A stretch of DNA of 64,000 nt from Phaeosaccion multiseriatum (Eukaryota > Protista > Ochrophyta, other classes): positions 1,240,001 to 1,304,000 of the forward strand of contig OZ218950.1 of the NCBI GenBank assembly GCA_965112735.1, written 5' to 3'. The notes below the pieces were generated by a model. That model was not told the DNA's origin. It was given only the letters and a program-made list of their open reading frames with translations, and searched no databases. The position numbers and the translations under genes are program-made. Below, in pieces: positions 11,737 to 53,914 of this stretch (its first letter is position 1; every line of letters starts with the position of its first letter).

Positions 11737-13361
11737 GTGGTGATGATGATGATGACAGTGACAGCGAGTGCTGCTTCGACATTGTGCCCGTGATCCAGTC
11801 CACACCAAGCGCTGACTCCTTTCGTGCCACGACCTCTCTACCAAGAATGAACCTTCAAAGCCCGCACTTCCAGCAGGGGGGACAGGGGATGGCAGTGAAT
11901 GGGCAGGGGCAGGAGTATGGGCGGGGGCAGGGGGGGGGGGTTCGACTTCTCCTCTTCCTCTCCGCGGCTGCTGCTTCAGTCCTCCTTGTCTTTCTCCGCT
12001 CCCTCGTTGGGGTTGTTGGGAGGGGGAGGAGGAGGAGAAGGAGGGCAAGCCGTGGGAGCAGCAGGAGCTGTAGCCGAAGCAAAAGGGACGCCTGGGGGGG
12101 GTGAAGGGGAGTCCAGCGGGGCCTTGGGTGCCTCAGTGCAGCTACTGTCGTCGGATAGCGATGCGCCGAGCAGCAGTGACAGGGGCAGCAGCGTCGGGGC
12201 CAACTGTCGCTTGTACGCATATTCCTCGCAGGGCTCGCTGCTGGATGAGTCACTCGAGCCCACTGCCGCTGCTGCTGTATCACCAACTGCTGCTGCTGCT
12301 GCTGCTGCTCCTGCCCATAGTGAAAGTGAGGAGGGCATCAAACCAGTCAAGGTAGCTGACAGTGGTGGTTGTGGTGGTGATGATGGTGATATCGGTGCAG
12401 GAGGTCGTCGTCGCCAGGAAAAGCCCCCTCCACCTTCGGTGCCTCCTTCCCCGAAGGATCTTCCACCAGCGGAAGTCACTTCCTATCGCCTTGCTCAGCG
12501 GCAGCAGAGGAGGCTGGAGCAGCAGCAACAGCAGCAGCAGCAGCAGCAGTGGGAGCAGAGGGCGGAGGAGGAGGAGGAGGAGGATCAGGAGGAGGAGGAG
12601 GAGGAGGAGGAGCAGGAGGAGGAGAAGGGGTATGCAGCAGTTGGGGATACAGTAGTGATGAAGCAGCACTACGCCGCCCATCGCCGCTCTGCCATTCCGC
12701 TCTATCGAGACACTGCACTGCATGAGACGGCGCTGCTGCTGCTGCTCGTGCTCGGCTCGGGGCAGGCAGATGGAGGTGCGTGTGTGGATGGGGTGGGAGT
12801 GATGGAAGGGATGGGAGGGATGGGGGGGATGGCAGTGGATGGCAGTGGATGACAGTGGATGAGAGTTGAAGGGGCGGGAGTGAGGGACGGCAGTGGACGA
12901 GGTTGGAGTGAGATATGGCAGTGGATGGGGGTAGGAATGATCTGCTCGACTGTGGCACAGCGGCAGGCCCTCTGACGACATTTGCTCACTGACATAGGGA
13001 CCTCCTCGTCAACACCCTCATCTCCGGGCCCCTCTCTCTCTCACGCGCGCGTGTGTGTGCGCGCACGTGTGATGGTGTTCTTCTTTGCGTGTGCGCTTGT
13101 GCGGTGTGTGCATGTGTAAGCAGGTTCCCATCTCGATCCCCGCTACTGCGCGAGTGAAGAGCAGCAGGGAGGAGGAGGAGGAGGAGGAGGAGGAGGAGGA
13201 GGAGGAGGAGGAGGCTTCAACATGCTGTATGGCCTGCAGGTAGGTGTCTGGAGCAGGATTATCAGCTGTCAGGATCAGGTCATCAGGGGGAGGGGAAGGG
13301 GAAGGGGAAGGGGAAGGTGCCTCTGATGCTCGTCACCCCTCTCTCACTTGCTTGGCTGTGC

Positions 13362-13416
<55 letters not shown>

Positions 13417-13473
13417 AGTCTGTCTGTCTGTCTGTCTGTCTGCCTGCCTGTCATCTGTCTGTCTGTCTGTCTT

Positions 13474-13528
<55 letters not shown>

Positions 13529-13535
13529 GCCTGTC

Positions 13536-13570
<35 letters not shown>

Positions 13571-14961
13571 GGTCTGTCGGTCTGTCTGTCTGTCTGTCTG
13601 TCTGTTCTGTCTGTTTGTCTGTCTGTCTGTCTATCCCTCCTTCCATCCATCCAGTGCCATCTTTGCGCTCCTGAGAACAAACACGTGCTTCCCGGGCTGG
13701 TGGCGCAGCTTCACCGCTTAGGTAGGGGACAGGGGGGGGGGGCGATGGCAGTGGAGGATAAGGGATATGAGTGGCTTGCCCCACAGCTTGTCTCTCCCGT
13801 CAATTTGGTGTCATTCCTACCCCCTTCCCTCCTCTCCTCTCCCTTGCTTCATGTGATCCTTGATGCATGTGACTCATCTATGCCCTGCCCTGTATCACCA
13901 ACTTCCCCCCCCCCCCGCCCTTCCCTCCCCAGGCAAGGATAAGCCTGCTCTGCTGTTGGCGAAGCTCTCGTTTGAGGATCTCTTCGAAGCGGCCTCTTAT
14001 CAAGACGAGGTGGCCACACTTGGTGCCGGACGCTTCGGGCAGGTCAGTCAAGTCGACTCGGTATCAGTCATTCAGCCAGCCAGTCAGTCAGTCAGTCAGT
14101 CAGTCAGTCAGTCAGTCAGTCAGTCAGTCAGTCAGTCAGTCAGTCAGTCAGTCAGTCAGTCAGTCAGTCAGTCAGACAGTCAGTCAATGCCTGGCGTCTG
14201 GTAGGTCAGTCAGGTCGACTCGGTATCAGTGAGTCAGTGAGTTAGAGTGTCAGTCAGTCAGTCAGTAACTGGTGTCGGTCAGTCACTCAGTCCTCACTAC
14301 TGGTATCAGTCAGTCAGTCTGTCAGTCAGAGTCAGTCAGTCAGTAACTGATGTCAGTCAGTCAGTCCGTCGGTCAGTCAGCCAGTCCGTCAGCCAGCACT
14401 TGGTGGAAGGAACGAACGAAGGAAGGAAGGAAGGAAGGAAGGAAGGCAGTCAGTCCGTCAGTAATCAACCAGTCAGTCAGTCAGTCAGTCAGTCTCTGTC
14501 TTGTGGGGTAATTCTCATCTCGTCGGGGGCTGGCTCAACCTCTACTCTTTGACCCTGACCCTCCAAATGCCTCCAAATGCCTCCAAATACCTCCATATGC
14601 CTCCATACGCTTCCAACCCCTTCTCAGGTGTTCGCTGTGAGAGCACCTCCTTCCATGAGGAGGCAGGGACTGGGACATTTGGTGGGCAACAGCTGTCCTG
14701 ACACCAACAACACGTTCACAGATGGCGATGATAGTGAGAATGGCAGCAGAGGCACAGTTGCGGTCAAGCGCATCCCCCGGGAGGATGGTCCTCTATGGGC
14801 TCAGTCCCCCGGGGGGGGCGGGGCTTTGTGACGTGTTTGCGGAGGTGAGGGCACTGCAGTTGCTGAAGGATGTGAAGGGGGTGTGTCGCCTTCTCGACTT
14901 TGGCGGTACAAAAACGAACTATACGATGGTACTGGAGCGGTGTGAGGTTAGCCTCAAGCAG
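7720..14961 (+). CDS. Large low-complexity protein with a Tudor/Agenet-like domain and a protein-kinase N-lobe; multi-exon, frameshifts at G runs, kinase C-lobe missing, start uncertain
   Basis: YEVGQEVDA...WFPGTI...FSVK|FDDGD (10158-10690); LGAGRFGQ|VFAV (14020-14042, 14628-), VAVKRI, EVRALQLL, VCRLLDFG, MVLERC (to 14961). Confidence 0.55.
13362..13631. repeat. (TCTG)n intronic microsatellite
   Basis: Direct inspection. Confidence 0.95.
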
Positions 14962-15042: not shown

Positions 15043-15392
15043 GTCCTCCTCCTCCTCCTCCTCCTCCTCCTCCTCCTCCTCCTCCTCCTCCTCCTCCTCC
15101 TCCTCCTCCTCCTCCTCCTCCTCCTCCTCCTCCTCCTCCTCCTCCTCCTCCTCCTCCTCCTCCTCCTCCTCCTCCTCCTCCTCCTCCTCCTCCTCCTCCT
15201 CCTCCTCCTCCTCCTCCTCCTCCTCCTCCTCCTCCTCCTCCTCCTCCTCCTCCTCCTCCTCCTCCTCCTCCTCCTCCTCCTCCTCCTCCTCCTCCTCCTC
15301 CTCCTCCTCCTCCTCCTCCTCCTCCTCCTCCTCCTCCTCCTCCTCGTCCTCCTCCTCCTCCTCCTCCTCCTCCTCCTCCTCCTCCTCCTCCT
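15043..15392. repeat. (CCT)n microsatellite, ~350 bp, with duplicated flanks
   Basis: Direct inspection; the flanking sequence recurs at ~15468-15625 around a shorter tract. Confidence 0.95.
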
Positions 15393-15667
15393 CCCCCTCC
15401 CCCCCCCCTTCCTCCTCCTCCCCTCCCCCTTCCACCTTTTCCCCTCTCACTCCTAATATATCCCCCCGGAGGGAAGGAGAGAGAGAGAAGGGAGAGAGGG
15501 GGAACGTCCTCCTCCTCCTCCCTCCTCCTCCTCCTCCTCCTCCTCCTCCTCCTCCCCCTCCCCCCCCCCTTCCTCCTCCTCCCCTCCCCCTTCCACCTTT
15601 TCCCCTCTCACTCCTAATATATCCCCCCCACCCCGTCCACTGCCATCTCTCCCCCCCACCCTTATAG

Positions 15668-18198
15668 AACCAAGTCTCGATTCCCAGGCAGCCGTATCTC
15701 CGCAGACTCCCTCGTGGCGTGGGCGCTGCAGGCAAGCACGCCTTCGGTCGGACAGCTCACCACCGATACTCTGCCCAGGTCAGTCAGTCAGTCAGTCAGT
15801 CAGTCAGTCAGTCAGTCAGTCGGTCAGTCAGTCAGTCAGTAGGTCAGTCAATCAGTCAGTCAGTAGGTCAGTAGGTCAGTAGGTCAGTCAGTCAGTAGGT
15901 CAGTAGGTCAGTCAGTCAAGCAGTCAGTCAGTCAAGCAGTCAGTCAGTCAGTAGGTCAGTAGGTCAGTAGGTCAGTCAATCAGTCAGTCAGTCAGTCAGT
16001 CAGTAGGTCAGTAGGTCAGTAGGTCAGTCAATCAGGCAGTCAGTCAGTCAGTCAGTCAGTAGGTCAGTTGGTCAGTCAGTCAAGCAGTCAGTCGGTCAGT
16101 CAGTCGGTCCGTCAGTCAATAAGGATTGGCGCTTTCTGCTTCGATCGGAGGGCGTTCTGTTCCCTTCACTTTTCTTGTCTTATACCTTCCTTCCACTTCC
16201 TTGCCCCCACTGCCTTCCACCCACTGCCTTCCTTCCCCACGCCACCACCACTCACAGATACTACACACTGGCGGCGAAGGAAGTAACCGTTTTCACTGAC
16301 GTGGACCTTGACGCCAACAGCAAGGGCTACGAGTACTTCGCCACAAGGTTACGTAAGGCCACGCAGGGCTTACCTAAGCATGAGGTAGTCACCAACATTG
16401 CGGATGCAGAAGAGCTCAAGGAGAGGATGGCAGAGAGGTACATGATTACTGATATGGAGGGACGAGATACAGCGGTGGGCATGCGCGTCGGGCTCAAGTT
16501 CTTTGCCATGAAGGTGAGCGTGTTGGTGATACAGAGAGAGAGAGAGAGAGAGAGGGAGGGAGGAGTGGAAGCCACACCACGCCATTTGACATCATTTGGT
16601 TGGCACTTTTTTGACACAGACGCTATTCTCTTTTTGGAGTAAGCGCAGAAGCTTCCATATGGACCCCACATAGAATATGGTGTTCGATTACTGATACGGT
16701 CACATAAAACAGAAACTGAAAATTGCTTGACACTTGCTTGACACTTGACATTTGACAGGGCGTGTTTTCAGGAGAAGCATTGGATGCGTTTGTTCGCTCC
16801 GTTCTCGCGGGGGATGTACAGCCCGTACATACAGCAGCGGGGCCGGAGACCTTCTCGGTGAGTGAGACTTGACCAGAGCATTTGGTGATACAAAGCAGAG
16901 CAGTTGGTGATGCAGAGCAAAGTAGACGAGGTAGAAAGTGATTCAAAACACTCCATGATCATATCACAAGACGTGACACATGTCGGTGATACATGCTGGT
17001 GATACTGACACATGTTGGTGAACATGTTGGTGATACAGGAGGAAGCGAAGCGGGTTCGTTCACGCTGAAAGGAATGTGAAGAAAGCCCTTCCTTGGCTGG
17101 TCTGTCTCAGCCATCCATCTTTCTTCCCTCATCTTTATCCATCCATCCGTCTACCCTACCTACCACCGTAACTTATTTATCCATATGCCTGTGTACGGCA
17201 CCGTATCACCAACACACCACAGCCGCCCATGCCATCGTCGCCGTTTGGCGAAGCCCAAGAGGAGGAGGAAGTGGACGACAGCCACGTCGTGCACGTAACA
17301 GACAAAACCGTCAAGGAGGTGAGGTGCTGGAGAGAGAGAAGTCCGGGGAGTCATGGCGATTGCGGTTGGGGAGGGAGGGTGCCCATTCCATAGCGCATCT
17401 TCTTTTGTTCTTTGTGTGCATCTTGCCTTCCGCTGCACTGAACGAACCTATGTTTTCTTGTCCCTCCCCTCTCCCTCCCTCCCTCCCTCCCTCCCTCCCT
17501 CCCTCCGTCCCTCCCTCCCTCCCCTCTCCCTCCCTCCCTCCCTCCCTCCCTCCCTCCCTCCCTCCCTCCCTCCCTCCCTCCCTCCCTCCCTCCCTCCCTC
17601 CCTCCCTCCCTCCCTCCCTCCCTCCCTCCCTCCCTCCCTCCCTCCCTCCCTCCCTCCCTCCCTCCCTCCCTCCCTCCCTCCCTCCCTCCCTCCCTCCCTC
17701 CCTCCCTCCCTCCCTCCCTCCCTCCCTCCTCCCTCCCTCCCTCCCTCCCTCCCTCCCTCCCTCCCTCCCTCCCTCCCTCCCTCCCTCCCTCCCCCCCTCC
17801 GTCCGTCCGTCCCTCCCTCCCTCCCTCCCCTCCCCGCTTTGTGTATTGCCAGGTGACAGAGAGCGGAGACGTGCTTATCGAGTTCTACGCGCCTTGGTGT
17901 GGCCACTGCAAGGTACGCTGCAAGTATGGCTGTTCGGCCTGTTTGTGTCCTTCTCTCTCTGTCTTTCTCTCTCTGTCCTTGTCTCTCTTTCTTCTCTCTC
18001 CTTCTGTCTCTATCTTCCCCTCTCTCTCCTGTCTTTCTCTCTATCCTCCCTCTATCTCTCTGTTCTGTCCGGTCCTGTCCTGCTTTGGCTCCTTGCAAAA
18101 GTCCAGCTCACGCTGACGTACATCATCACGTCCTCTCATCGGCGACCACCTACACACACACACAAACACACACATACATACACACACACAAACACACA

Positions 18199-19899: not shown

Positions 19900-20497
19900 T
19901 GTTAGAAGTCGTGCTTTTGCTAGACTGGTACCTACCCTCTGAATTCAGACCGGGAGGTACCAGTCTAGCAAAAGCACGACTTCTAACAAGCCCTAATGCT
20001 AGAAGTCGAACCCCCCCCCCCCCACCGCACATAGTGGAGAGAAGTAACTCGCAGTCTGGGAATCAGACTAATGGGTGCCAGCCGGTACCAGTTTTCGCCG
20101 AAAAACACACTTTTTTCACAAGCTACAGCCAGGATTCGAACTCGCAATGGCCTTGTTAGAAGTCGTGCTTTTTGCTAGACTGGTACCTCCCGGTCTGAAT
20201 TCAGAGGGTAGGTACCAGTCTAGCAAAAGCACGACTTCTAACAAGGCCATTGCGAGTTCGAATCCTGGCTGTAGCTTGTGAAAAAAGTGTGTTTTTCGGC
20301 GAAAACTGGTACCGGCTGGCACCCATTAGTCTGATTCCCAGACTGCGAGTTACTTCTCTCCACTATGTGCGGTGGGGGGGGGGGGGTTCGACTTCTAGCA
20401 TTAGGGCTTGTTAGAAGTCGTGCTTTTGCTAGACTGGTACCTCCCGGTCTGAATTCAGAGGGTAGGTACCAGTCTAGCAAAAGCACGACTTCTAACA
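19900..20497. mobile_element. 598-bp near-perfect palindromic element A-B-A-B'-A with three ~88-bp hairpin units; TG..CA ends; 4-bp TSD CGTA
   Basis: TGTTAGAAGTCGTGC...GCACGACTTCTAACA units at ~19900, ~20154 and ~20410; spacer B followed by its reverse complement; CGTA at 19896-19899 and 20498-20501. Confidence 0.88.
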
Positions 20498-23153: not shown

Positions 23154-26100
23154 CTGCAGGAGTCACACAGACACAACAGGGTCAGTAACAAGAGCGGGAC
23201 TCAACACGACGAAAGCTTTGGGCTCAAAGTCACTCACCTCGAAGCCGGGCACCTCTGCCCGGATACGCGAAACCGCCTGAGCCGCACTCAACGATGTGCC
23301 TCCCTCTGCGAACAAGTCGTCATTGGCCTGCAAGCGAGGCTGCTCTGTGGCCTGCCTCAGGATGCCCAGCACTTGGCGGGCAGTGTCGCCTAACGCCTCG
23401 TCGCCGTCGGACGACTGTACAGCGGTTTTAATGTTTGCTTCCGCCTTAATCATTCTCAGCACCTCTTTCACGTCTCGCTTCCCGCTGCTCGTCATCGGCA
23501 GAGCATCCACGGCCACAGCCGTGCTCGGCACCATGTATGCCGGTAGCAGCTTGCCCACTCCTTGCAGCACCACCTCAACGTCGGCACTAGGAGGTGTCAG
23601 AGCCGCCACAACCGTCTCACGCTCTCTGTCCACGGCTGCCACAGCGCTCCTCACACCCTCTTGATGGAGCAGCGCAGCCTCCACCTCGCCCAGCTCAATG
23701 CGATAGCCGCGCACCTTCACTTGAGAGTCTCGGCGACCCCTAAACACCAGCGATCCGTCTGCCAGCTGCCGCACCAAGTCACCCTGTCCGAAGGTGTTAA
23801 GTTTGAGACGCGTCAGATCAGAACAGTGCCACAGGGCAGCAGAGAAAACCACCTCGACCCCCCCCCCCCCGTTGCATTCTCTGCTGTTCACTGCATGACA
23901 TGCCAAAAGCAAGCCAAATGTACACACAACACACGCACACACACAAAGCCGCACACCCATGGGCAACCTTTTCCACTTACCGTACGATACACTCTGCGCT
24001 GGTCCGCCAAGAAGGGCGCGGGGATGAAGGCCTTCGACGTGAGCTCTGGGCGCTTCAAGTACCCACGGGCCAGCTGTCTCCCCCCAATGCACAGCTCGCC
24101 CTCCACGCCCTGAGGCACCAGCTGCAGACGCTTATCCACCACATACACTTGCACGCCGGCTCGAGGCTTGCCGATGACGAACCCATTCGACATGGCACCC
24201 GGACTGTACTCATGCGTCGTCACGGCATTCGTTTCGGTTGGGCCGTAGCTATTCACAAGGCGCACATGGTGCCTCCACATGTCCACTTGGCCTTCCTTGA
24301 TCGGCTCCCCAATCAATGCGATGGACCGTAGGGTGGCCTCCTTAGCTCCAGTGGTGATGTCTTGCGGTCGGAGCAGCGACAGCAGTGACGGGGTGCAGTA
24401 CATGTCCGATACCCTCAAAGACCGTATCAGCTCCGGCAGGTCGTTCAGCATGGAGCCCTTCTCTGCCAAGCAAAGCGTCGCCCCACACGACAACGGCCCG
24501 AACAGCGACGCCACAGACACATCAAATGTCAAAGCCGCACTCAGGAGCACACGAGAAGATGCCGTTATCGTCAGCTCCTCTTCGAAGAGAGTCGCCATGA
24601 AGCTGGCCGTGCTTCCATGCTCAATCATCACGCCCTTTGGCCGGCCGGTACTACCGGACGTGTGAATCACGTACGCCATGTTCTCGCCCACCGCGTGGCA
24701 CACAGGCTCCGCGGTACTCTCCATTTGCATCACAGCCACCACGTCCACACAGCTCACGTCTCCGACACGCCGCGCTAAGCTGGCATCGGCGGTTGCCAGC
24801 ACCTCAGACTCGCCTGCTGCCTTTGCCGTCGTCAGAACGACGCTCAGCCCGGCGTCTTGTGCGATCATCGACAGCCTATCGTCGGGATGCTCGGGATCCA
24901 GGGGCACGTACGCCGCCCCGGCCTTGAGCACGCCCAGCACTGCCACAACCGCCTCCACGCAGTCCCCAGCAATCAGCACCCCCACCAGGCACTCCGGCCC
25001 CACGCCCCTCCCCTGCAGCATGCATGCCACCGCATTCGCATGCCCATTCAGCTCCCCGTAGCTCATCACCCGACCCGTCTCATACTCGTGCAGGGCCTCC
25101 TGCTCCGGACTGCGAGAGGCCATCTCTTCGAAAGCCGCGTGCAGGAGGGGCGGTGGTGGCGATGCTTCCTCTGCACCTCCCTCCGTGTCTCCATTGGCAT
25201 CCCCCGCCACCAGTGCAGCGCCGCTCAACGTATCCACCACCTTCACACGGTCCTCGTGTGCCAAGAGACTCAGCTTCCACACGCTCTCGCCCGGCCTGCC
25301 CACTGCACTCTCCAGCAGCGCCAGGAAGCTCCGCCCCAGGGTCTCCACTGTGGCCTGGTCGAGCACCGCCGTATTGTAGCACAGGCTGCCGAGCATATCC
25401 GACGCACTGTCCGTGCTGCGCACAAGGCATAGCTCGATGTCAGCCGTATTCTTCCAAGTATCCACACCCGCCTCCTGCAGTACAAAGAAAGCCTGCAGCG
25501 CATTACCACGACCATCTCTGCCCAGCTGGGCCCGCTCCACCACCTTGTGGAACGGTGCCTCGGCATGCTTCATGGCACCCAGATACGCGACCTGTACGCG
25601 AAGAAGCACCTCCCGAAAGCTGGGGCTTCCTCCCAGGCCCAGACGGAACGCGAGGGTGTTGACGAAGCATCCCATCACGCCCTCCAAGCCTTGCGCCACG
25701 TCTCTTCCGAAGTGCGCAGTGCCCACCACCACGTCCTCCGCTCCGCACACACGAGCCAGCAGCACTTGGAACGCGCCCATGAGCCCCACAAACAGCGTGG
25801 CGGAGCTATCCGCGCACAGTTTACTCAACTTGACCAGCATTCCATTGGGTAGGACCAAGTCCACCCTCCCGCTTCCTCCCACACGGATATCTTCACGCAC
25901 CATTTCTCCACTGAGGCTCATTTGGGCATGTCGCTGACGGAGAGGCAGCTGCAGTGGACTGGTACCAGCCAGTTGACCCTGCCAGTATTCAAGCAGCTCC
26001 TCAATACGGCCTTCGCCGTCCAGCCGAGCTCGTTGCCACCTGGAGTAGTCCGCGAAGCTGAAGGGCAGAGCCGGTAGGTCTTGTGCGATTCCTCTCCCGG

Positions 26101-29100
26101 CCATGGCAGCCGCGCATGTGGCCTTGAACTCGCCCTGGAAGAGCAAGTAGGATGCACCATCAAAGATGCAATGATGGAAAGTAGATACTGCGGCATACTG
26201 CTCCTCTAGTCCGCTCTGCTGCGGGAGGTGTACGACCAACGTACGCCATAGAGGCTGGCTCCGCTCCAAATCGAATGGACGAGCGATATCGGCCTCGATC
26301 AGGCTCCGAGCGGCCCCAACACTGGTGGCCACGGCAGAGGAGAGACCAGCTGACACCACCGCGGCTGCCGTAGTTCCAAGCTGTAGCTGCCTCAGAGAGC
26401 CCTGCTTTGTCCACTCAAGCGACGTCCGGAGCACATCATGTCGCTCCACTATGCTGCCTAACACTTGTGCTATCATGTCCACAATTTCAGCGGATGTTCG
26501 TCCGGAGATCAGCGAGACTGGCAGCGGCAGCACAAGTGGGAGATTGTACGCGCTCTGCCCGCCAGGGGAAGTCGTCCGCAGTGCTATGTCTGAAAAGTAC
26601 ATGTGTTCCTGCTGGTAAGCCGCGGGGGCGTCAGCATCCAAGGAGAAGTAGTACGAAAGACCTGTTGCTTGATCATCAGGCTCACTCAGATGCCCCGAGT
26701 CCGCTCCCAGCACTTCCTCTTGGATCCATGCAGCCATTGCAGACACCGATGGATACGTAAACAAGGCGCCGCTCGACATGGTGACACCACACCAGGCCTC
26801 GACTCGCTTGCCAAACTCCACGGAACCCATCGAATCGAGCCCGGCTTCCATCAAGGGCATCGTTGCTGTAATGGTCACGTCATCGCCAACACACTCGACT
26901 GCCATACCCGTCAGGACATGCTCGATCCTCTCCCGCCGTGCTGACTCCGACAAGTGCAGGAGCTCCTCCCGCACCTCGGCATTAACCTTTGCCGCCTCAC
27001 CACTTTCTCCGCGGTCCGTCAACTGCCCGAGAAAATCGCTGTGCACAGGGGCCAAGCTCGCTCGGAATCTGGACCACCTCATGGCCGGCATGACGGCCAC
27101 CTCCTGCACGTTGGCTTGCGATTGACTTGCAAGGACGGCATCCAGAGTCTTCATACCTAGCGCCGATGAGATCAGGCCCACTCCGGCCATCTCCGCAGCT
27201 TTGGACACCATTTCAAGCCGCACCGCCATACCCACGTCGCCCCATGGGCCCCACTGAATGTTGGAAGCAGGAAGGCCAAGCTGGCGTCGGCGGTACCGCA
27301 TCAGCCCGTCCAAAGCAGCATTGGCCCCGGCATAGGCGCTCTGATTGGACAAGCCAAGCAAAGCGGAGGTCGATGAGTACGAGGCGAAGAAGTCGATCTC
27401 CTCCCTGCCGCTCGCCGCCCACTCAAGGCACAGCGCGTGGAGATTCCAACCTCCCTGTATCTTGGCGGCAAAGACGTTTCGCACGTTCTCTTCCTTCTCG
27501 CCCGACAACATTCCCTTTGTGCCATTCACCTCCGCTGCGTGGATCACACCCCGAATATGAGGCAGGCCCACCAAAGCATTCGCTACAGCATCTCGAAGCT
27601 GGCACATGTCAGACACATCGCAGGCCACGGCCACAGCGGTGACACTCTCCATGCTCTGCAGGGCCTGCCACAGCTCTGAAACTTCCTCCGCCACCCGGCC
27701 GCTTTGAGAAAGGAGGAGCAGGTGTCGAGCACCCTGGGAGACCAAGTGATTCGCCGTCGCCAGCCCCAGCCCCCCCAGACCACCGCTGATCAGGTAGGTC
27801 CCATCCTCCCTGCACGTGAAGCGATCGACTCCTGCCGGCGTCAGATGGAGTGTGCTGGGCACCAGCCTCGGAGCGAGGATCCCACACCCTCGAACCAGCA
27901 GGTCCACGCCTCGGCCGCCGTCGCGGGCTCCTGCAGCCAGCGTCACAGCCTGGGAGATAGCTTGGGCTTCCATCTTCTCTACTCTAGGTCGTGCATCCTC
28001 AAACTGTGGATACATGGCATACTCAAGGTCGATGTGGTTCACATCGAGGTCGCCCCGCTCCAGGCGTACGCTTCTCACCAGTCCCACTGCCCAGCTGTCC
28101 TGCCAACCAGCACCGCTGTACACTCCCGTTGTCACCACCGTGATCGGCATCACTGCCGCGTCCCCGTCTAAGCTCTGTACAGTTTGCACAAAGTGGATTG
28201 CCCCATCGGTAGCAGAGCCCGTTGCTGACGTCAAGTAGAAGAGATGGGCCCCACGTGGCTGCGCGTCCGAGCCGAGCGCCTCCACCATGTGCACCTCTAC
28301 ACCAATTGCTGCCGCCGTGCTTTGGATAGCTTCCAAGGCTCTGTGGTTGTTCGATGCGTGCTGCTCTTCAGCTGCCTGGGGAATCACGACGAGCCACGGA
28401 AGGTGGCCGGTCAGCGAAGCCGGCTGCGAAGCCGTGGGCACCTCCACCGCCTCCCACTCAACAACATAGAGCGGGCCCTGCTCAGCTTCACTCCGCGGCT
28501 GACGTGCTGCTGTGGCTCGCGCTGTGTACCAAGGAAAGGCTTTGCGCGTTGGGAACAGGATATGCTCCTTGCCCTTACTCTCTGGCTGCTGCACTGTGCT
28601 TAGAGCTGCTCGAAACGAATCCTCAGAGTTCTGCCCTCGTGTGAGGGAGGAGATCCACGCCAACCCCTCGCGACGCTCGCACTTGGCTCCCATGCTGCTC
28701 AGCACAGGGTTGGGGCCCACCTCAACGATGCTCAGGTCAGCCCCCCTCCCGTCTCCCATCCAGTGCTCCACCACCGTGTGGATGCCTTCTGCGAACAGCA
28801 CTGGCGACAGCATGTGCTGCACCCAATACGTCGCCTGCGTCACCTCCTCCCCTCTCACCACCTCACCCGTCACGTTGGACACCAGGGGAATGCGTGGGGC
28901 GCTGAATGACACCTGCCTCAGAACCTCCTCCAGCGCACGTACAGCGGGCTCCATCAGAGGAGAGTGGAAGGCGTGCGATACCTCCAGGGCCTTGCAGCCC
29001 ACCCCATCTGCCGTCAGCCTCTCCACCACCTTGTCCACACCGCTGCGCGCTCCAGAGATCACGCTCGCGCTCGGTCCATTCGACGACGCCAGCACCACCT

Positions 29101-32100
29101 CGCCTGCCCCCCCCGCAGCGTCGATGCTTGCCAAAGTCGCCTCTTTGCCTGCCGTCACTGCGAACATCACTCCCTTGCCCTCGGGGCAGGCCTGCATGGC
29201 GGCTCCTCTCTTGGCGGACAGCATCAGTCCATCCTCCAGCGACATGACGCCGGCCACGCACGCCGCCACCACCTCGCCCAGGCTGTGGCCCATCACCATG
29301 GACGGCTCCACGCCCTCCGACTTCCAAAGCTCACACAGGGCGTACTCCAGCACAAACAGGCACGGCTGGCAGTAGCGTGTCTCCTTCAGCAGAGCTTGTG
29401 CAGTCTCCTTCTCCTTCCCCTCCTCCTCCTCCTCCTCCTCCTCCTCCCCGTCCTCAGCGACCGCCGGGTACATGAGCTCCACCACAGACTTGTCCAGCCA
29501 AGCCCGCTCCATGAGCAACCTGCTGCACCGCTGTATGCACTCGCGGAACACGCCCTCTTCCTCGTACAGCTCTCTGCCCATGCCCACGTATTGCGAACCC
29601 TGTCCAGTGAACACAAACGCCACCGGTGCACGCTTCTTGCTTTGCTGTCCATCCAGCTGCAGCAAGGCTTCGCCCCTCTCAACCAACGTTGGTCCGAAGC
29701 TGCTGAGCACTGCGTGGGCATTCGTGCCTCCAAATCCGAAGGAGCTCACCCCCACCACCACAGATCCATCGGAGTTGGTGGGTAAAGGGGTCATGGAAGA
29801 TGGGAACAGGACTGCAAGTCCCTCCATGTCGAGCTCTGGATTTTGCTCGATGAAGTGAAGATTGGGTGGAGCGGTCTTGTGCTGCGCCATCAGCACTGCT
29901 TTGATGAATCCGGCAATCCCTGCTGCACCCTCCAAGTGCCCAATGTTTGTCTTGAGCGCCCCCACGATCAAAGGCTTCGCTTCATCGCGGTCGTGGGCGA
30001 ACACTCCTCTCAGAGCGCTCATCTCGATGGGGTCGCCGAGAGACGTGCCCGTGCCGTGCGCCTCCACGAAACTGACGTCGTTCGGACACAGCCCAGCGTC
30101 GATCAAGGCGTCTGCGATGAGCTGCTTTTGAGCGCCAGGGTTTGGAGCCGTCATCCGCGCGGTGGGCCCATTATGGTTCACAGCCGAGCCTCGCAAGACA
30201 GCCAGCACCTCGTCGTCGTTGGCAAGGGCGTCGTCTAGGCGCTTCACCACGATTGCTCCGCACCCCTCGCCTCTGACGTAGCCGTTGGCGGACTTGTCAA
30301 ATGTTTTACAGTGCCTTGAGAGTGAGGACGGAAGAGGGAAACAGGGGAGATTTAGCTAAGAAGGCGGGAGGAGAAGGGGCGATCTAAGGTTCTCACTCTA
30401 CCTCCCTGAACGAAACAGTGGTGCGTAACCAGGTGCCTGCCGACTATAATACTAGCTTCCACCTGCCGGGGTATCATACTCATTCACTCTCTCCCTCCCT
30501 TCCTCCCTCCCTCCCTCCCTCCCTCCCTCCCTCCCTCCCTCCCTCCCTCCCTCCCTCCCTCCCTCTCTCACCCCCTCCCTCCCTCCTTCCCTCCCTTCCC
30601 TCCTTCCTTCCTCCCTACTCTCCCCCCAACGCACACTCACGCACTCACCCATCTGGCGAGAGAAACCCTCCTGAGGAAAGGACCTTGAAGGGCGCCTCGC
30701 TGAGTAGCAGGTTCACTCCTCCGACGACAGCTGTGTCACACTTGCCCAATCGCAGGCTGCTGCAGGCGTTGTCCAGGGCGACCAAGGAAGAGGAGCACGC
30801 CGTGTCTACCGTTGAGCTCGGCCCCTTCAACCCCAGCGCGTAGGAAACTCGGTTGGCCAAATTCGACATGGAGGCTCCTGACGCCACGTACACGCTCTCG
30901 CTTGCCTCGCCAGCTCCTTGGCTTGCTTTGACCTGCAGCCAATCGCTTCCAGCGCAGCCAACAAAGACCCCTGTCTCGCTCTTGCGGAGACTGCGCTTGT
31001 CATAGCCTGCCCTGTGCAGCGCCTCGAAGGCCACCTCCAGCAGCACGCGCTGATTGGGGTCCATGCTTTCCACTTCCGCTGACGAAATGCCGAAGAAGGC
31101 GTTGTCGAAGAGGTGGACGCCCTCTATGAAGCCTCCTCGCCACTCCTTAGAGCCGCTTCCCCACCGGTCTGCTGGAGCTGTAGAGATGCAGTCCGATCCC
31201 GTGCAAAGCATGCTCCAGAAACCTTGGGGCGAAGTCACTCCTCCTGGAAAGCGGCACGCCATGCCCACCACCGCCAGCGGAGCTCGCACGCCTTGAGGCG
31301 AAGCCGAGGTGGGGCGCAAACCTCGCATTGGGTCTGTGACAGCCCTTCCCATTACCTCGCCATCAAGCCAGCCCACAAGCTCCGCCAAGCTGGGGTACTC
31401 AAAGAGCACATCGACGGTGGCTGTAACCCCAAAGTCCGTGTGAAGGCGATTCCGCACCTCCACGAGGGCCATCGAATCCAGGCCTGCCTCCATCAAGGGC
31501 ACATTGTCGTCCAGCGGGGGCATGTCTGCATCAACACACTTCAGCACGGTCGCCTTGAGCGCTTCCAGGAGAGCAGCGCGCCGATCCTCTGGGGAGAGAG
31601 CAGAGAGAGTCTCGCGCAGCTGTGAGAGGGCGTCTCCAGCTGGGGGAGGAGCAGATACAGGACCCTCGAAATCATGCGCTGGTGTTGCCCTCTTCGGGAG
31701 GGGAAACTCTCGCGACGAGGGGAACCCCTGCCATGGGGTGCCCACTCTCTCTGCTGCGCCTTTGGGCCTCATGCCGCCGTAGCTGCCCAAGATGACGTGG
31801 GCGTTGAAACCGCCAGCAGCGTAGGAATTCACTCCTGCGAGCAGCGTCGAGCCGTCGGAGCAGTAGGAAGAGAGGGGCGTCCTTCGGGTGGGCAGCGTGA
31901 CGGGCACGCCCTCCAGCTTCAGGTTGGGGTTGACCTCCTTGAGGTGAAGGTTGGCTGGGGCCTCTCGGTGCTGTACTACCAAGATGGCCTTGATGAGCTG
32001 AGCCATCCCTGACGCCCCTTCCATGTGGCCTAGAGTAGTCTTTACAGTGCCCACTACAAGGGGGGAGGCATCAGGCCTGTTGGGGGTGAACGCTGCCTTG

Positions 32101-35100
32101 AGTGCGCCTAATGAGTACCACGCGACGTGCGTGCGTGCGTGCGTGCGTGCGTGAGAGGGGGAGAGAGGGAGGGAGGGAGAGAGGAAGGGAGAGGGGGGGT
32201 AGGAGGGTGGGAGGGAGGGAGGGTAGGGGGGAGTGAGGGAGTGAGGGAGGGAGGGAGGGAGGGGGGAGGGATGGAGGGATGGAGGGAGGGAGGGAGGGGG
32301 GGGGGGAGGGAGGGAGGGAAGGAGGGAGGGAGGGAGGGAGGGAGGGAGGGAGGGAGGGAGGGAGGGAGGGAGGGAGGGAGGGAGGGAGGGAGGGAGGGAG
32401 GGAGGGAGGGAGGGAGGGAGGGAGGGAGGGAGGGAGGAGGGAGGGAGGGAGGGAGGGAGGGAGGGGGAGGGAGGGAGGAAAGGATGGAAGGAGGAGGGAT
32501 GAAGGGAGGAAAGGAGGGAGGGAGGGACGAGTGGAGGGCACGAATACGCTTTATTATGTCTCATCACATCATCATTTTTCTAGCTGAGACGTAAGAGAGA
32601 CATCACAATGATGGTCCAACACGAATCCCCACCTTTAACCCCCTTTGCTTCCTTCAACGTACCCAGCTCGATGGCGTCGCCCATGACCGTTCCCGTGGCG
32701 TGAGCCTCAACGTAGCCCACTTCTCTCCCCTCGCACGCTGCCTGCCGCAGGGCGCTCCTCGCCAAGCTCTCTTGGGCGGCTCCCTTCGCGGCAGACAGAG
32801 AACTGCTGACGCCGCTGTGGCTGACAGCCGCTGCCTTGATGACGGCAAGGATATTGTCTCCGTCCTTGATGGCGTCCGGCAGGTACTTCAGCACGACGGC
32901 CCCGCTGCCCTCACTGCGCACGTAGCCGTCCCCGGCGGCGTCAAAGGATTTGCAGTACCTGGAGCAGGAGACGGGACACAGAAAGTAGAGTGGGGGGGGG
33001 GTGGATCAGTGTCCAAGCAAGGGACCAGAGAGAAGAGAAAGGGTGCTTTGGAAGGAAGAATATAGATGCAGCAACAGCTGCAGGAGCAAACTCACCCTTC
33101 CTTCGACAGAAGTCCTGCACTGGCCAGGGCGCCAAAGCCTTGGTCGTGGAGCAGCAGGTTGACCCCGCCAACGACGGCAGAGCTGCACTGCCTCAGTTTC
33201 AGACTGTTGCACGCGTTGCTAAGGGCCACTAGGGCCGACGAACATGCTGCGTCTATGCTTTCGCATGGACCTACAAGGCCGAGTGTGTGCGAAATGCGGC
33301 CAGCGAAACATGCTCTGCTTGCCCCTACCGACGTGTAGGCGCTGAGAGAAACACCATCAGCGCTCTCACGCAGCAAAGCGGGCCAGTCACTCCCTGCAGC
33401 GCCCACAAACACGCCAACTCGGTGACCTTCAAGCCTGCGTCGGCCCTCGTAGCCGGCTCTGTGCAGAGCCTCGTACGCCACTTCGAGCATGATGCGCTGG
33501 TTGGGATCTTGGGCCTCCGCCTCGGCGGTGGACATGCCGAAGAATGCGTTGTCGAACACTTCAACACTGTCGATGAAGCCACCTGCTCGCATGACGGGGA
33601 GAGGAGGAGCGTTCAAAATGGGGTGAGTGGGGCACAGAGACGGGCAAAGAAGCGCCCAGCAGCAAAGCTGTTCATGCCCTTCAAGACTAACATTTGCAAG
33701 CCTCGTGGACACAGGGTAAAAACGCACCTCTCACTCCTGTTCCCAAGCCTCGCTCAAGGGGTGCATCGGTGACGCAGTCCTCTTTATTGCACAGCTTCGC
33801 CCAGAGCTCTTCCGGGCTGTTGCAGCCACCGGGGAACCGACAGGCCATCCCAATGACTGCAATATGGCCGCTGCTGCCGTCATAAGAAGGTACCCCAGGA
33901 ATGGAGCGAGGCAGTCCGTCAATGCCAGGAAGCGTGTCCTCCCTGCTCGCACACAAGCGAGACACACCCCTCGCGGTGGGCGTGTGGAACATCTCTGCCA
34001 CCTGGAGCGCCTAAGTACAGCAACGAGTAAAGAGATCCGACGGTCAACGACTACATTAGCAAACCATTTGGAACCACCGGCCACACCAGAAAGACAGCCC
34101 TCCGTCCCACTCACCTCGAAGCCTGGCACCTCTACGCGGATGCGCGCTGTGACACTTACAGCGTCAAGCGAAGTGCCTCCCTCGGCGAACAAGTCGTCGC
34201 TGGCTCGCAGACCCGGCCGCCCAATGGCCTCTCGCATAATGCCGAGCACTTGACGGGTGGTGCCGTCCATAGGTGCGTCATCGCTGACGCTTAGGCTCCG
34301 TTGCTGGCCAGGGCCATGGTGACGTGCAGCTCGAATGGCTCTGAGAACCTCTTTCACGTCTCGCTTCCCGCTGCTCGTCATCGGTAGAGCATCCATAGCC
34401 ACAGCCGTGCTCGGCACCATGTATGCCGGTAGCAGCTTGCTCACTCCTTGCAGAACCATCTCAACGTCGGCACTAGGAGGTGTCAGAGCCGCCACAACCG
34501 TCTCGCGCTCGCTGTCCACGGCTGCCACAGCACTCCTCACACCCTCTTGATGGAGCAGCGCAGCCTCCACCTCGCCCAGCTCAATGCGATAGCCGCGCAC
34601 CTTCACTTGAGAGTCTCGGCGACCCCTAAACACCAGCGATCCGTCTGCCAGCTGCCGCACCAAGTCACCCTGTCCGAAGGTGTTAAGTTTGAGACGCGTC
34701 AGATCAGAACAGTGCCACAGGGCAGCAGAGAAAACCACCTCGACCCCCCCCCCCCCGTTGCATTCTCTGCTGTTCACTGCATGACATGCCAAAAGCAAGC
34801 CAAATGTACACACAACACACGCACACACACAAAGCCGCACACCCATGGGCAACCTTTTCCACTTACCGTACGATACACTCTGCGCTGGTCCCCCAAGAAG
34901 GGTGCGGGGATGAAGGCCTTTGACGTGAGCTCTGGGCGCTTCAAGTACCCACGGGCCAGCTGTCTACCCCCAATGCACAGCTCGCCCTCCACGCCCTGAG
35001 GCACCAGCTGCAGACGCTTGTCCACCACATACACTTGCACGCCGGCTCGAGGCTTACCGATGACGAACCCACTCGACGTGGCACCCGGACTGTACGCATG

Positions 35101-38100
35101 TGTGGTCGCGAAAACCGTCGCCTCTGTTGGGCCGTAGCTATTCACAAGGCGCACATGGTGCCGCCACATGTCCACTTGGCCTTCCTTGATCGGCTCCCCA
35201 GCCAATGCGATGGACCGTAGGGTGGCCTCCTTAGCTCCAGTGGTGATGTCTTGCGGTCGAAGCAGCGACAGCAGTGACGGGGTGCAGTACATGTCTGTTA
35301 CCCTCAAAGACCGTATCAGCTCCGGCAGGTCGTTCAGCATGGAGCCCTTCTCTGCCAAGCAAAGCGTCGCCCCACACGACAACGGCCCGAACAGCGACGC
35401 CACAGACACATCAAACGTCAAAGCAGCACTCAGGAGCACACGAGAAGATGCCGTTATCGTCAGCTCCTCTTCGAAGAGAGTCGCCATGAAGCTGGCCGTG
35501 CTTCCATGCTCAATCATCACGCCCTTTGGCCGGCCGGTACTACCGGACGTGTGAATCACATACGCCATGTTCTCGCCCACCGCGTGGCACACAGGCTCCG
35601 CGGTACTCTCCACTTGCATCACAGCCACCACGTCCACACAGCTCACGTCTCCGACACGCCGCGCTAAGCTGGCATCGGCGGTTGCCAGCACCTCAGACTC
35701 GCCTGCTGCCTTTGCCGTCGTCAGAACGACGCTCAGCCCGGCGTCTTGTGCGATCATCGACAGCCTATCGTCGGGATGCTCGGGGTCCAGAGGCACGTAC
35801 GCCGCCCCGGCCTTGAGCACGCCCAGCACTGCCACAACCGCCTCCACGCAGTCCCCAGCAATCAGCACCCCCACCAGGCACTCCGGCCCCACGCCCCTCC
35901 CCTGCAGCATGCATGCCACCGCATTCGCATGCCCATTCAGCTCCCCGTAGCTCATCACCCGACCCGTCTCATGCTCGTGCAGGGCCTCCTGCTCCGGACT
36001 GCGACAGGCCATCTCTTCGAAAGCCGCGTGCAGGAGGGGCGGTGGTGGCGATGCTTCCTCTGCACCTCCCTCCGTGTCTCCATTGGCATCCCCCGCCACC
36101 AGTGCAGCGCCGCTCAACGTATCCACCACCTTCACACGGTCCTCGTGTGCCAAGAGATTCAGCTTCCACACGCTCTCGCCCGGCCTGCCCACTGCACTCT
36201 CCAGCAGCGCCAGGAAGCTCCGCCCCAGGGTCTCCACTGTGGCCTGGTCGAGCACCGCCGTATTGTAGCACAGGCTGCCGAGCATATCCGACGCACTGTC
36301 CGTGCTGCGCACAAGGCATAGCTCGATGTCAGCCGTATTCTTCCAAGTATCCACACCCGCCTCCTGCAGTACAAAGAAAGCCTGCAGCGCATTACCACGA
36401 CCATCTCTGCCCAGCTGGGCCCGCTCCACCACCTTGTGGAACGGTGCCTCGGCATGCTTCATGGCACCCAGATACGCGACCTGTACGCGAAGAAGCACCT
36501 CCCGAAAGCTGGGGCTTCCTCCCAGGCCCAGACGGAACGCGAGGGTGTTGACGAAGCATCCCATCACGCCCTCCAAGCCTTGCGCCACGTCTCTTCCGAA
36601 GTGCGCAGTGCCCACCACCACGTCCTCCGCTCCGCACACACGAGCCAGCAGCACTTGGAACGCGCCCATGAGCCCCACAAACAGCGTGGCGGAGCTATCC
36701 GCGCACAGTTTACTCAACTTGACCAGCATTCCATTGGGTAGGACCAAGTCCACCCTCCCGCTTCCTCCCACACGGATATCTTCACGCACCATTTCTCCAC
36801 TGAGGCTCATTTGGGCATGTCGCTGACGGAGAGGCAGCTGCAGTGGACTGGTACCAGCCAGTTGACCCTGCCAGTATTCAAGCAGCTCCTCAATACGGCC
36901 TTCGCCGTCCAGCCGAGCTCGTTGCCACCTGGAGTAGTCCGCGAAGCTGAAGGGCAGAGCCGGTAGGTCTTGTGCGATTCCTCTCCCGGCCATGGCAGCC
37001 GCGCATGTGGCCTTGAACTCGCCCTGGAAGAGCAAGTAGGATGCACCATCAAAGATGCAATGATGGAAAGTAGATACTGCGGCATACTGCTCCTCTAGTC
37101 CGCTCTGCTGCGGGAGGTGTACGACCAACGTACGCCATAGAGGCTGGCTCCGCTCCAAATCGAATGGACGAGCGATATCGGCCTCGATCAGGCTCCGAGC
37201 GGCCCCAACACTGGTGGCCACGGCAGAGGAGAGACCAGCTGACACCACCGCGGCTGCCGTAGTTCCAAGCTGTACCTGCCTCAGAGAGCCCTGCTTTGTC
37301 CACTCAAGCGACGTCCGGAGCACGTCATGTCGCTCCACTATGCTGCCTAACACTTGGGCTATCATGTCCACAATTTCAGCGGATGTTCGTCCGGAGATCA
37401 GCGAGACTGGCAGCGGCAGCACAAGTGGGAGATTGTACGCGCTCTGCCCGCCAGGGGCAGTCGTCCGCAGTGCTATGTCTGAAAAGTACATGTGTTCCTG
37501 CTGGTAAGCCGCGGGGGCGTCAGCATCCAAGGAGTAGTAGTGCGAAAGACCTGTTGCTTGATCATCAGGCTCACTCAGATGCCCCGAGTCCGCTCCCAGC
37601 ACTTCCTCTTGGATCCATGCAGCCATTGCAGACACCGATGGATACGTAAACAAGGCGCCGCTCGACATGGTGACACCACACCAGGCCTCGACTCGCTTGC
37701 CAAACTCCACGGAACCCATCGAATCGAGCCCGGCTTCCATCAAGGGCATCGTTGCTGTAATGGTCACGTCATCGCCAACACACTCGACTGCCATACCCGT
37801 CAGGACATGCTCGATCCTCTCCCGCCGTGCTGACTCCGGCAAGTGCAGGAGCTCCTCCCGCACCTCGGCATTAACCTTTGCCGCCTCACCACTTTCTCCG
37901 CGGTCCGTCAACTGCCCGAGAAAATCGCTGTGCACAGGGGCCAAGCTCGCTCGGAATCTGGACCACCTCATGGCCGGCATGACGGCCACCTCCTGCACGT
38001 TGGCTTGCGATTGACTTGCAAGGACGGCATCCAGAGTCTTCATACCTAGCGCCGATGAGATCAGGCCCACTCCGGCCATCTCCGCAGCTTTGGACACCAT

Positions 38101-53100: not shown

Positions 53101-53213
53101 CGCGCGGGGGAGTGGCCGTGAATGCGGTGGAGCAGCATCAGGAAGTGGCCGTGAATTCGGTGGAGCAGCATCTGGACCATCAGCCGTCACAGGAGGTGGG
53201 GGTGAATGCAGTG

Positions 53214-53244
<31 letters not shown>

Positions 53245-53830
53245 CGGCGCAGCAGCCGCGGCTCACGCCCACCCAGCAGCGGCCCTTGCTGTTCCACGGC
53301 TCGGTCAAGCAGCGTGGCAACGGCAATGCCCCATTTAACTGCATGACTTGTCGCCGCGCCGGCCATGGATGGATAGAATGCAACGCCATTCCCGCTACGC
53401 GTGAGGAGCTGCTCGGCCTTGTGAGTCGCGTGCAGCGGCGGCAGGCGGTCAGAGCGCTGCACCAGGAGTCCGACATGTCTGAAGCCGTAGCAGCAATGGT
53501 GGCGGGCACTCTGGCGGCGCAGGACGGGTTCAAGTTCGAAGGCTGACGGTGCCCCGGGGCTGCTTGGCCAGCAGCCCTGGGGACCACGACCGCAGCGCGT
53601 GAGGATAGCGTCGGCGTGGGGGGACAGGGGGGGAGGGCAGGCAAGAGCAGTGTAGAAGATAATGAATGTACTTCGCACCTATCTTGTTTGTCAGACCCAC
53701 CTTTGCCCCATGCCGACGCTCAGCGTAGGAGCGGTCAGGCTAGTCGTGTAGAGCAGGAATCACCTGCCATCAGAGTTTATCGGAGTGACATGTGGTGTGG
53801 CGACAGACTTGCTGAGCTGCGACGCAAGCA

Positions 53831-53914
<84 letters not shown>

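Follow-up and report, generated by a model that had tools for sequence, protein, structure and literature searches.

The terminal module of a giant algal PKS-NRPS gene carries an adenylation (A) domain that is nearly identical to that of an internal module of the same gene, except in the residues that line the specificity pocket. We consider it likely that the two modules have been homogenised by gene conversion while their pockets were kept distinct, and that they select different building blocks. The terminal pocket has a loop one residue shorter than that of its twin, is common to a few other A domains of the same genome, and has a history in conflict with that of the remainder of the domain.

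Twin modules and the position of their differences

The sequence studied (hereafter, the window) is a stretch of 64,000 nt from Phaeosaccion multiseriatum (assembly GCA_965112735.1, contig OZ218950.1, positions 1,240,001-1,304,000 of the forward strand). It carries the 3' half of one giant algal PKS-NRPS gene on the minus strand, running from beyond position 64000 to position 20511 in long open frames that are cut by GT-AG introns lying inside domains (Table 1). A putative intron of 12.6 kb contains a retroelement.

Table 1. Features of the PKS-NRPS gene in the window (listed 5' to 3' along the gene for the domain strings) and the four A domains with the short-loop pocket.
Feature	Position	Strand	Basis or remark
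KS, N-terminal part	window edge	minus	Pfam; first in 5'->3' order
KS(C-part)-AT-KR-ACP-KS(N-part)	46668-50891	minus	Pfam
KS(C-part)-DH-ER-KR-ACP-KS(N-part)	41339-46804	minus	Pfam
KS(C-part)-AT-KR-ACP-C-A	34774-41190	minus	Pfam; holds copy 1 A domain
Asub part of A domain and carrier domain	33731-34852	minus	Pfam
KS...ACP-KS stretch	30645-33727	minus	Pfam
KS(C-part)-AT-KR-ACP-C-A, second time	23888-30250	minus	Pfam; holds copy 2 A domain
Asub and carrier domain	23163-24092	minus	Pfam
Putative terminal membrane domain, Pls/PosA type, divergent, 876 aa	20511-23141	minus	TIGR02353, Hexapep
Twin unit 1: domain string as in unit 2, then a further KS	34340-40304	minus	self-blastn, Pfam
Twin unit 2: KS(C-terminal part)-AT-KR-ACP-C-A-(part of T)	23454-29415	minus	self-blastn, Pfam
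Copy 1 (internal module, loop ATVFA, Ala301), exon piece, A1 to first half of A7	34867-36072	minus	
Copy 1 loop block, E-ATVFA-TT	35099-35142	minus	no net length difference from GrsA 294-397
Copy 2 (terminal module, short loop), exon piece, A1 to first half of A7	23981-25183	minus	ends ...VYRT at GTAAGT donor
Copy 2 codon ATT, Ile at GrsA 301 (copy 1: GCT, Ala)	24311-24313	minus	1AMU register
Copy 2 loop block, E-TNAV-TT, 41-nt haplotype	24213-24253	minus	site table, alignment; 3 bp shorter than copy 1
197-nt GT-AG intron splitting motif A7 (YRT/GD)	23784-23980	minus	splice sites read
Next exon: A8-A10 (Lys517 in SSGKRD) and carrier domain (GGTSL)	23166-23783	minus	TIGR01733, AMP-binding_C
L001			terminal-module A domain under study (copy 2)
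L002	82.9 kb upstream of L001, same contig		near-identical counterpart, part of second gene copy
L005, L006	another contig (C2)		two adjacent modules of an NRPS

The A domains of the internal module (copy 1) and of the terminal module (copy 2) were each found to be split by an intron within motif A7, that of copy 1 being near-identical to, and at the matching place of, that of copy 2. The exon pieces upstream of these introns matched the whole of the Pfam AMP-binding profile (PF00501, positions 1-384 of 384; E = 7e-74 for copy 2 and 6e-75 for copy 1). Against a TIGR01733 cutoff of 317 bits, model positions 1-359 scored 310 bits in the first exon piece of copy 2 and 318 bits in that of copy 1, and positions 361-409 scored 67 bits on the next exon. 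Both twins are NRPS amino-acid adenylation domains, in which TIGR01733 and PF00501 are covered end to end. The core motifs A3, A4 (FDxS, Asp235), A5 (NxYGPTE), A6, A7 (YRTGD), A8, and A10 (Lys517) are intact in both, motif A4 reading FDVS and thus retaining the conserved Asp of GrsA position 235.

When the window was compared with itself by blastn, the two twin units formed an alignment of 5965 columns in which identity was 98.68%, mismatches numbered 76, and only one gap occurred. This sole gap is a 3-bp indel (24224/24225 versus 35111-35113), and it moves the duplication offset from 10889 to 10886 amid kilobases of near-identical sequence, just as the first-pass annotation of this DNA had described. 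Perfect identity between the twins extended over 1975 bp (26951-28925). By contrast with an expectation of 0.66, about 15 difference events, including the indel, fell inside 51 bp (24186-24236), a cluster with a Poisson P of 8e-16, or about 5e-12 when corrected for all window positions; differences between the copies are clustered rather than evenly spread. Further clusters were observed at the repeat edges (23454-23650 and 28926-29415), and the pocket is therefore the only internal hotspot of twin differences, though the edges differ too.

At the protein level, the twin A domains differ at 14 residues on a scaffold that is 97% identical, and 10 of these differences lie at position 301 (Ile/Ala), in the loop (TNAV in copy 2, ATVFA in copy 1), and at three residues directly following it, in keeping with the earlier claim that the twins differ mainly in the specificity pocket. 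The upstream C domains of the twins differ at three residues. The quoted segments on which that claim was built, beginning SIALIGE in copy 2 and SIALAGE in copy 1, match the minus-strand translations.

Positions were numbered by alignment to GrsA (1AMU). In the long-loop twin, query residues 14-117 corresponded to chain residues 294-397 with no net length difference, whereas in the short-loop twin residues 16-116 corresponded to 296-397, with one residue fewer. From these range offsets, position 301 was assigned to the Ile/Ala site and position 327 to the Glu of GPTE, and the differences fall at 301 and at 328-332. This agrees with the assignment of the differing residues to GrsA code positions made at first pass, and the one-residue deficit of the terminal domain holds against both GrsA and the twin. 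Which residues are read at 330/331 depends on gap placement, being N,A in the MAFFT alignment and A,V in that of HMMER. An HMMER alignment to LgrA contained a single gap, located in the loop. In an AlphaFold2 model built from a 36-sequence alignment (mean pLDDT 80.5, pTM 0.85), GPTETNAV lies between strands 308-313 and 322-326, which corresponds to the beta13-beta14 hairpin. The pocket codes read here, DVAYAAS-VF-K for copy 1 and DVAYAIS followed by the four-residue loop TNAV for copy 2, agree with those that had been read by eye.

Distribution and history of the short-loop pocket

A six-frame search of the whole genome recovered 24 closely related A domains, all of which were aligned. The TNAV short loop together with Ile301 was present in only 4 of the 24 (L001, L002, L005, and L006), at three loci (Table 1). 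At every site of the loop block, including two synonymous third positions, the state of L001/L002 is common only to L005/L006, and the 41-nt run of the loop block is identical in L001, L005, and L006. In 100-nt windows along the domain, L001 was 97-100% identical to its twin except in the window holding the loop, where it was 84% identical to the twin and 94% identical to L005/L006. In the 17-nt stretch between the Ile301 codon and the loop (24254-24270), the twins side with one another and differ from L005-L009. This twin-shared stretch divides the pocket differences into two small islands within homogenised sequence.

A maximum-likelihood tree of the 24 domains was constructed with the 150-nt pocket patch removed. 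In this tree the short-loop and long-loop neighbours were sisters (100/98 support), and an AU test rejected monophyly of the short loop, with the four domains held together, at p = 0.0003. The phylogeny of the specificity region thus conflicts with that of the remaining A domain, and the terminal domain belongs to known kinds, as a mosaic NRPS A domain with a short-loop pocket. Among the 16 closest paralogs, variability was concentrated at domain positions 256-336 (around GrsA 272-346), while the first 210 and the last 50 A-domain residues were almost invariant.

The first-pass annotation had viewed the terminal domain as a specificity switch caught in progress, which would make it a domain that has been accumulating new pocket mutations since a recent tandem duplication and is now midway. 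The high similarity of the twins and the concentration of their internal differences in the pocket would be in line with this, as would a few changes near the loop that only one of the twins carries (in copy 2, the Asn of SNGF; in copy 1, the Ala of HAY and the Thr of GATS). However, the pocket type is complete rather than intermediate, and four A domains at three loci carry it as an established allele. The loop block, its indel, and the two synonymous sites are identical to those of L005/L006 on another contig, and the discordant patch-free tree rejects one origin of the short-loop domains. The same pocket is also found in the near-identical second gene copy 82.9 kb away, and may therefore predate that duplication of the gene. 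We regard a switch still under way as very improbable, and this part of the earlier interpretation was abandoned.

The mosaic was read from the assembly consensus, and reads of paralogous modules mixed during assembly or polishing might produce a similar pattern in a region as repetitive as this one, in which modules are 94-100% identical and a perfect repeat extends over 2 kb. Against such an artefact, the same mosaic is seen in both L001 and L002, whose gene copies differ at a few other sites, and neither the reading frame nor the intron nor any motif is disrupted. In addition, the 3-bp indel is in frame and lies outside any homopolymer, which is atypical of long-read error, and the genome assembly comprises 67 Mb in 22 contigs. 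A consensus error of this kind is, in our judgement, highly unlikely.

We propose that the tandem KS-AT-KR-ACP-C-A-T units have been homogenised by gene conversion, in a process of concerted evolution, while the pocket codons (301 and the beta13-beta14 loop) would have stayed distinct between the homogenised twins. The terminal pocket type (Val236, Ile301, and TNAV) is one of several discrete types present among the approximately 24 paralogs. Two routes may have led to this state: selection may have kept the pocket type while its flanks were overwritten, or the pocket type may have been imported as a short conversion tract. By either route the pocket difference would matter to the organism, and the two modules would thus probably select different building blocks. 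We infer both that selection has maintained the pocket difference and that the substrates differ.

If the pockets were instead equivalent, with the same substrate or a relaxed specificity, the patch would represent a neutral remnant that gene conversion had left unerased. The near identity of the upstream C domains could be taken in this sense, and so could the fact that normal-loop A domains of the copy 1 type (L008 and L010) also feed a Pls-like domain. A neutral remnant, however, would not be expected to coincide with position 301 and the loop at 328-332; the surviving differences lie on positions that confer specificity, and the two islands are separated by sequence common to the twins. 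Moreover, L005/L006 keep the same pocket type at approximately 95% overall A-domain identity, and an indel in this loop alters specificity in VinN and in engineered TycA. We therefore consider equivalent pockets improbable, and continue to favour homogenised modules whose pockets were kept apart and whose substrates differ.

In bacteria, recombination is known to target the variable parts of Acore and to leave the interfaces and C domains alone (PMC8097286), and gene conversion has changed the specificity of McyA2 (PMC3640908). The present case resembles that of microcystin McyA2/McyB1 and those of Baunach et al. 2021, in that the specificity part of Acore has a history of its own and neither the C domain nor the flanking interfaces have been altered. 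It differs from the bacterial cases in that it occurs in a eukaryote, between paralogous modules of one genome, in that the discordant tract is limited to about 41 nt and one codon rather than most of the Acore subdomain, and in that concerted evolution of tandem modules appears to form the background. As for the C domains, their near identity is a poor fit to a role as acceptor-site gatekeeper if the substrates differ in backbone class; C domains have been argued not to be stringent filters (Baunach et al.).

Comparison with A domains that activate beta-amino acids

The shortened loop had been put forward at first pass as a mark of VinN-type beta-amino-acid-activating enzymes, and a published review gives support for this use. 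The hallmark was taken as described in that 2024 review (PMC11253843). According to the review, A domains for alpha-amino acids have a beta13-beta14 loop one residue longer than that of VinN, in which it carries positions 330/331; in VinN, bulkier residues face this loop at the equivalents of GrsA 236 and 301, and IdnL1, CmiS6, and HitB follow the same scheme. In TycA, conversion of the four-residue loop to a tripeptide, with A236V always selected, changed the preference 40,000-fold towards beta-Phe (PMC11253843).

The terminal A domain separates the Glu of GPTE from TT by four residues, as against five in the 20 long-loop paralogs, and combines Val236 with Ile301, the twin's pair being Val236 and Ala301. 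With Asp235, Val236, Ile301, and the shortened loop, it thus carries the hallmarks of the VinN type, namely a shorter loop, a bulkier residue opposite the loop, and a retained Asp235. The pairing of Val236 with a loop one residue shorter is likewise that of engineered TycA. The bulky residues themselves are different, VinN having Phe and Ser, and so are the loop residues, for which engineered TycA has Xaa-Leu-Val and VinN K/R. Enzymes of the VinN type are bacterial and stand alone, loading stand-alone carrier proteins with macrolactam starter units, whereas the terminal A domain is part of an in-line C-A-T module of a eukaryotic PKS-NRPS. Neither VinN nor IdnL1, CmiS6, or HitB was found among the best 60 sequence matches with solved structures; these were A domains of in-line NRPSs, those of LgrA, TycA, and GrsA among them. 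In sequence, the terminal A domain is not kin to VinN.

Within the family, Ile301 occurs with a normal loop in L007, L009, and L011, and Val236 occurs in most paralogs, so that only the loop is unique to the short-loop pocket type. As a background, we used 378 bacterial A domains from 120 proteins matched by the A-domain protein search. The combination of Val236, a bulky residue 301, and a short loop was found in none of these 378 domains. A four-residue loop spacing, as judged by the family profile, was seen in 5 of the 378, and 4 of these 5 domains carry a DVQF.A[HQ]/xHVV pattern, which we take to be proline-like. The four-residue spacing in those bacterial domains is probably an artefact of the alignment. 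A general rule by which a short loop would indicate proline had also been entertained, and it was dropped, as the proline domain of GrsB1 (8P5O) showed neither a net gain nor a net loss of length relative to the long-loop twin. In this sample, normal loops were found in domains with a VDWVVSL-type code, presumably beta-alanine-like, and the short loop is therefore not a general mark of beta-amino-acid use; it is rare, yet not the sole route to a beta-amino acid.

A Foldseek search of the PDB with the AlphaFold2 model returned the engineered beta-Phe TycA (5N81/5N82) among its top matches, but other TycA variants and Txo1 were equally among them, so that the ranking does not discriminate. Similarly, the HMMER bit scores of engineered and other TycA structures gave an inconsistent ordering. 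By analogy with VinN and engineered TycA, the terminal A domain may select a beta-amino acid in the VinN manner, a reading that we hold only tentatively. Asp235 would then bind the beta-amino group, and the space gained from the shorter loop would accommodate the additional carbon of the backbone. Selection of an alpha-amino acid with a different side chain comes close to an even prospect, and the remaining probability falls to the same substrate as that of the twin or to an inactive domain.

The Pls-like end domain and the genomic setting

Downstream of the terminal A-T pair, the end domain matched TIGR02353 in three stretches with a total of 143.7 bits, below the curated cutoff of 423.1 bits, and on this evidence it appears to be a divergent relative of the Pls/PosA terminal domain. 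The gene shares with Pls/PosA an A-T pair that feeds directly into a C-terminal membrane domain with a match to TIGR02353. Unlike in Pls/PosA, a C domain and many PKS modules come before the pair, and its pocket is without an acidic residue to hold a basic side chain. The region 3' of the L001 A domain, comprising the carrier and the end domain, was 85-99% identical to those of L008, L010, L012, and, in part, L011, indicating that several genes end alike downstream of their last A domains. The last A domains of these other genes have normal loops and three other pocket types. The end domain thus does not require the short-loop pocket, since normal-loop A domains feed the same type of end domain elsewhere, and the occurrence of this pocket before a Pls-like end is particular to the present gene and its duplicate.

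It is conceivable, though rather unlikely in our estimation, that TNAV and Ile301 form a compact natural cassette by which an in-line A domain of an NRPS changes its choice from an alpha- to a beta-amino acid, and which has been moved or preserved among modules by gene conversion. If so, the Pls-like membrane domain would receive from the terminal module a beta-amino acid acylated with a polyketide. More generally, should the substrates of the twins differ, the two domains would represent a natural minimal pair, separated by about ten residue changes, one of them the deletion of a loop residue, on a scaffold with 97% identity, and exchange units of such a kind are sought by NRPS engineers. The pair would then be a natural counterpart of the laboratory alpha-to-beta switch of TycA, and the first of its kind in an in-line module of a eukaryote. 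Should the substrates be the same, the difference would amount to ordinary paralog variation. With distinct substrates, concerted evolution with preserved specificity islands would be at work inside algal megasynthase genes.

A Pfam scan of ten ORFs in the first 20.5 kb of the window (1-20.5 kb) revealed no relevant enzymes of beta-amino-acid supply. No close eukaryotic relatives were present among the listed matches of a protein search with the A-domain region of the 2120-aa ORF, these matches being bacterial multi-A-domain NRPSs with 33-42% identity. Orthologs were likewise not found in metagenomes, where the best match had 39% identity and all matches were bacterial-looking, many from gut samples. 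The window itself bears a Ty3-like LTR retroelement on the plus strand, which, together with the introns, indicates a eukaryotic genome.

Tandem occurrence of the megasynthase 3' part

The A-domain pair L002/L003 (G000:C1:1181127-1193147), which lies 82.9 kb further upstream on this contig, showed ~100% identity to window positions 23993-36072, and its pockets were likewise one short (TNAV loop with Ile301) and one long. Because the twin A-domain pair recurs in this way, the megasynthase gene is duplicated in tandem over its 3' portion and perhaps over its full length. The twin units themselves, one the terminal and the other an internal module, shared 1975 bp without any mismatch in the AT-KR region (26951-28925 versus 37840-39814), bordered by divergence of 1-3%, and this stretch has the appearance of a gene-conversion tract of very recent origin.

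Features within the megasynthase and beside it

No acyltransferase match was found at E <= 1e-5 in the module at 41339-46804, whereas the neighbouring modules have one. The Ty3-like element, which encodes RT, RNase H, a DEDDy-type exonuclease, and integrase between identical 196-bp LTRs (51036-51231 and 63409-63604), resides in an intron of the same gene, ~8-12 nt past a GTAAGT donor whose position divides a KS domain. The unoccupied counterpart of this site was seen in a paralogous intron (41190-41340). Inspection of the flanks (50850-51080 and 63560-63700) indicated that the element appears to be flanked by a short GTGT-type target duplication. The first three tandem-repeat tracts listed in the table are common to one another, in either orientation; the first lies within the megasynthase reading frame, with a KS C-terminal piece on one side and an ACP on the other. 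The palindrome is directly 3' of the megasynthase stop codon.

Coordinates of features in the window and of A-domain runs elsewhere in the genome
Feature	Location	Strand	Remark
Megasynthase module	window 41339-46804	-	KS, DH, ER, KR, ACP matches
Ty3-like LTR retroelement	window 51036-63604	+	12.6 kb; LTRs and encoded domains
Short-period tandem repeats	window 32151-32540, 17461-17834, 5327-5525, 15044-15454, 13353-13632		
Near-perfect palindrome	window 19900-20497		598 bp; 98.7% self-complementary
Five A domains	G000:C2:2642251-2658376		
Seven A domains	C2:985512-1009095		
Three A domains	C8:1953520-1962187		

A-domain runs and acidic-pocket paralogs

In the C2 and C8 runs, A domains were spaced at ~3.7 kb, each with an open frame of ~1000 aa, suggesting that these are multi-module NRPS genes in which every A domain is interrupted by an intron at the identical position. 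Along the runs, pocket types alternated, and the run of five included two short-loop modules side by side. Two C2 paralogs, L012 (C2:2642251) and L013 (C2:996718), carried Ala236, Glu239, and Asp278 (pocket string DAEDAGS); the acidic residues among them suggest a basic amino acid as substrate. Of the two, L012 is the final A domain ahead of another Pls-like end.
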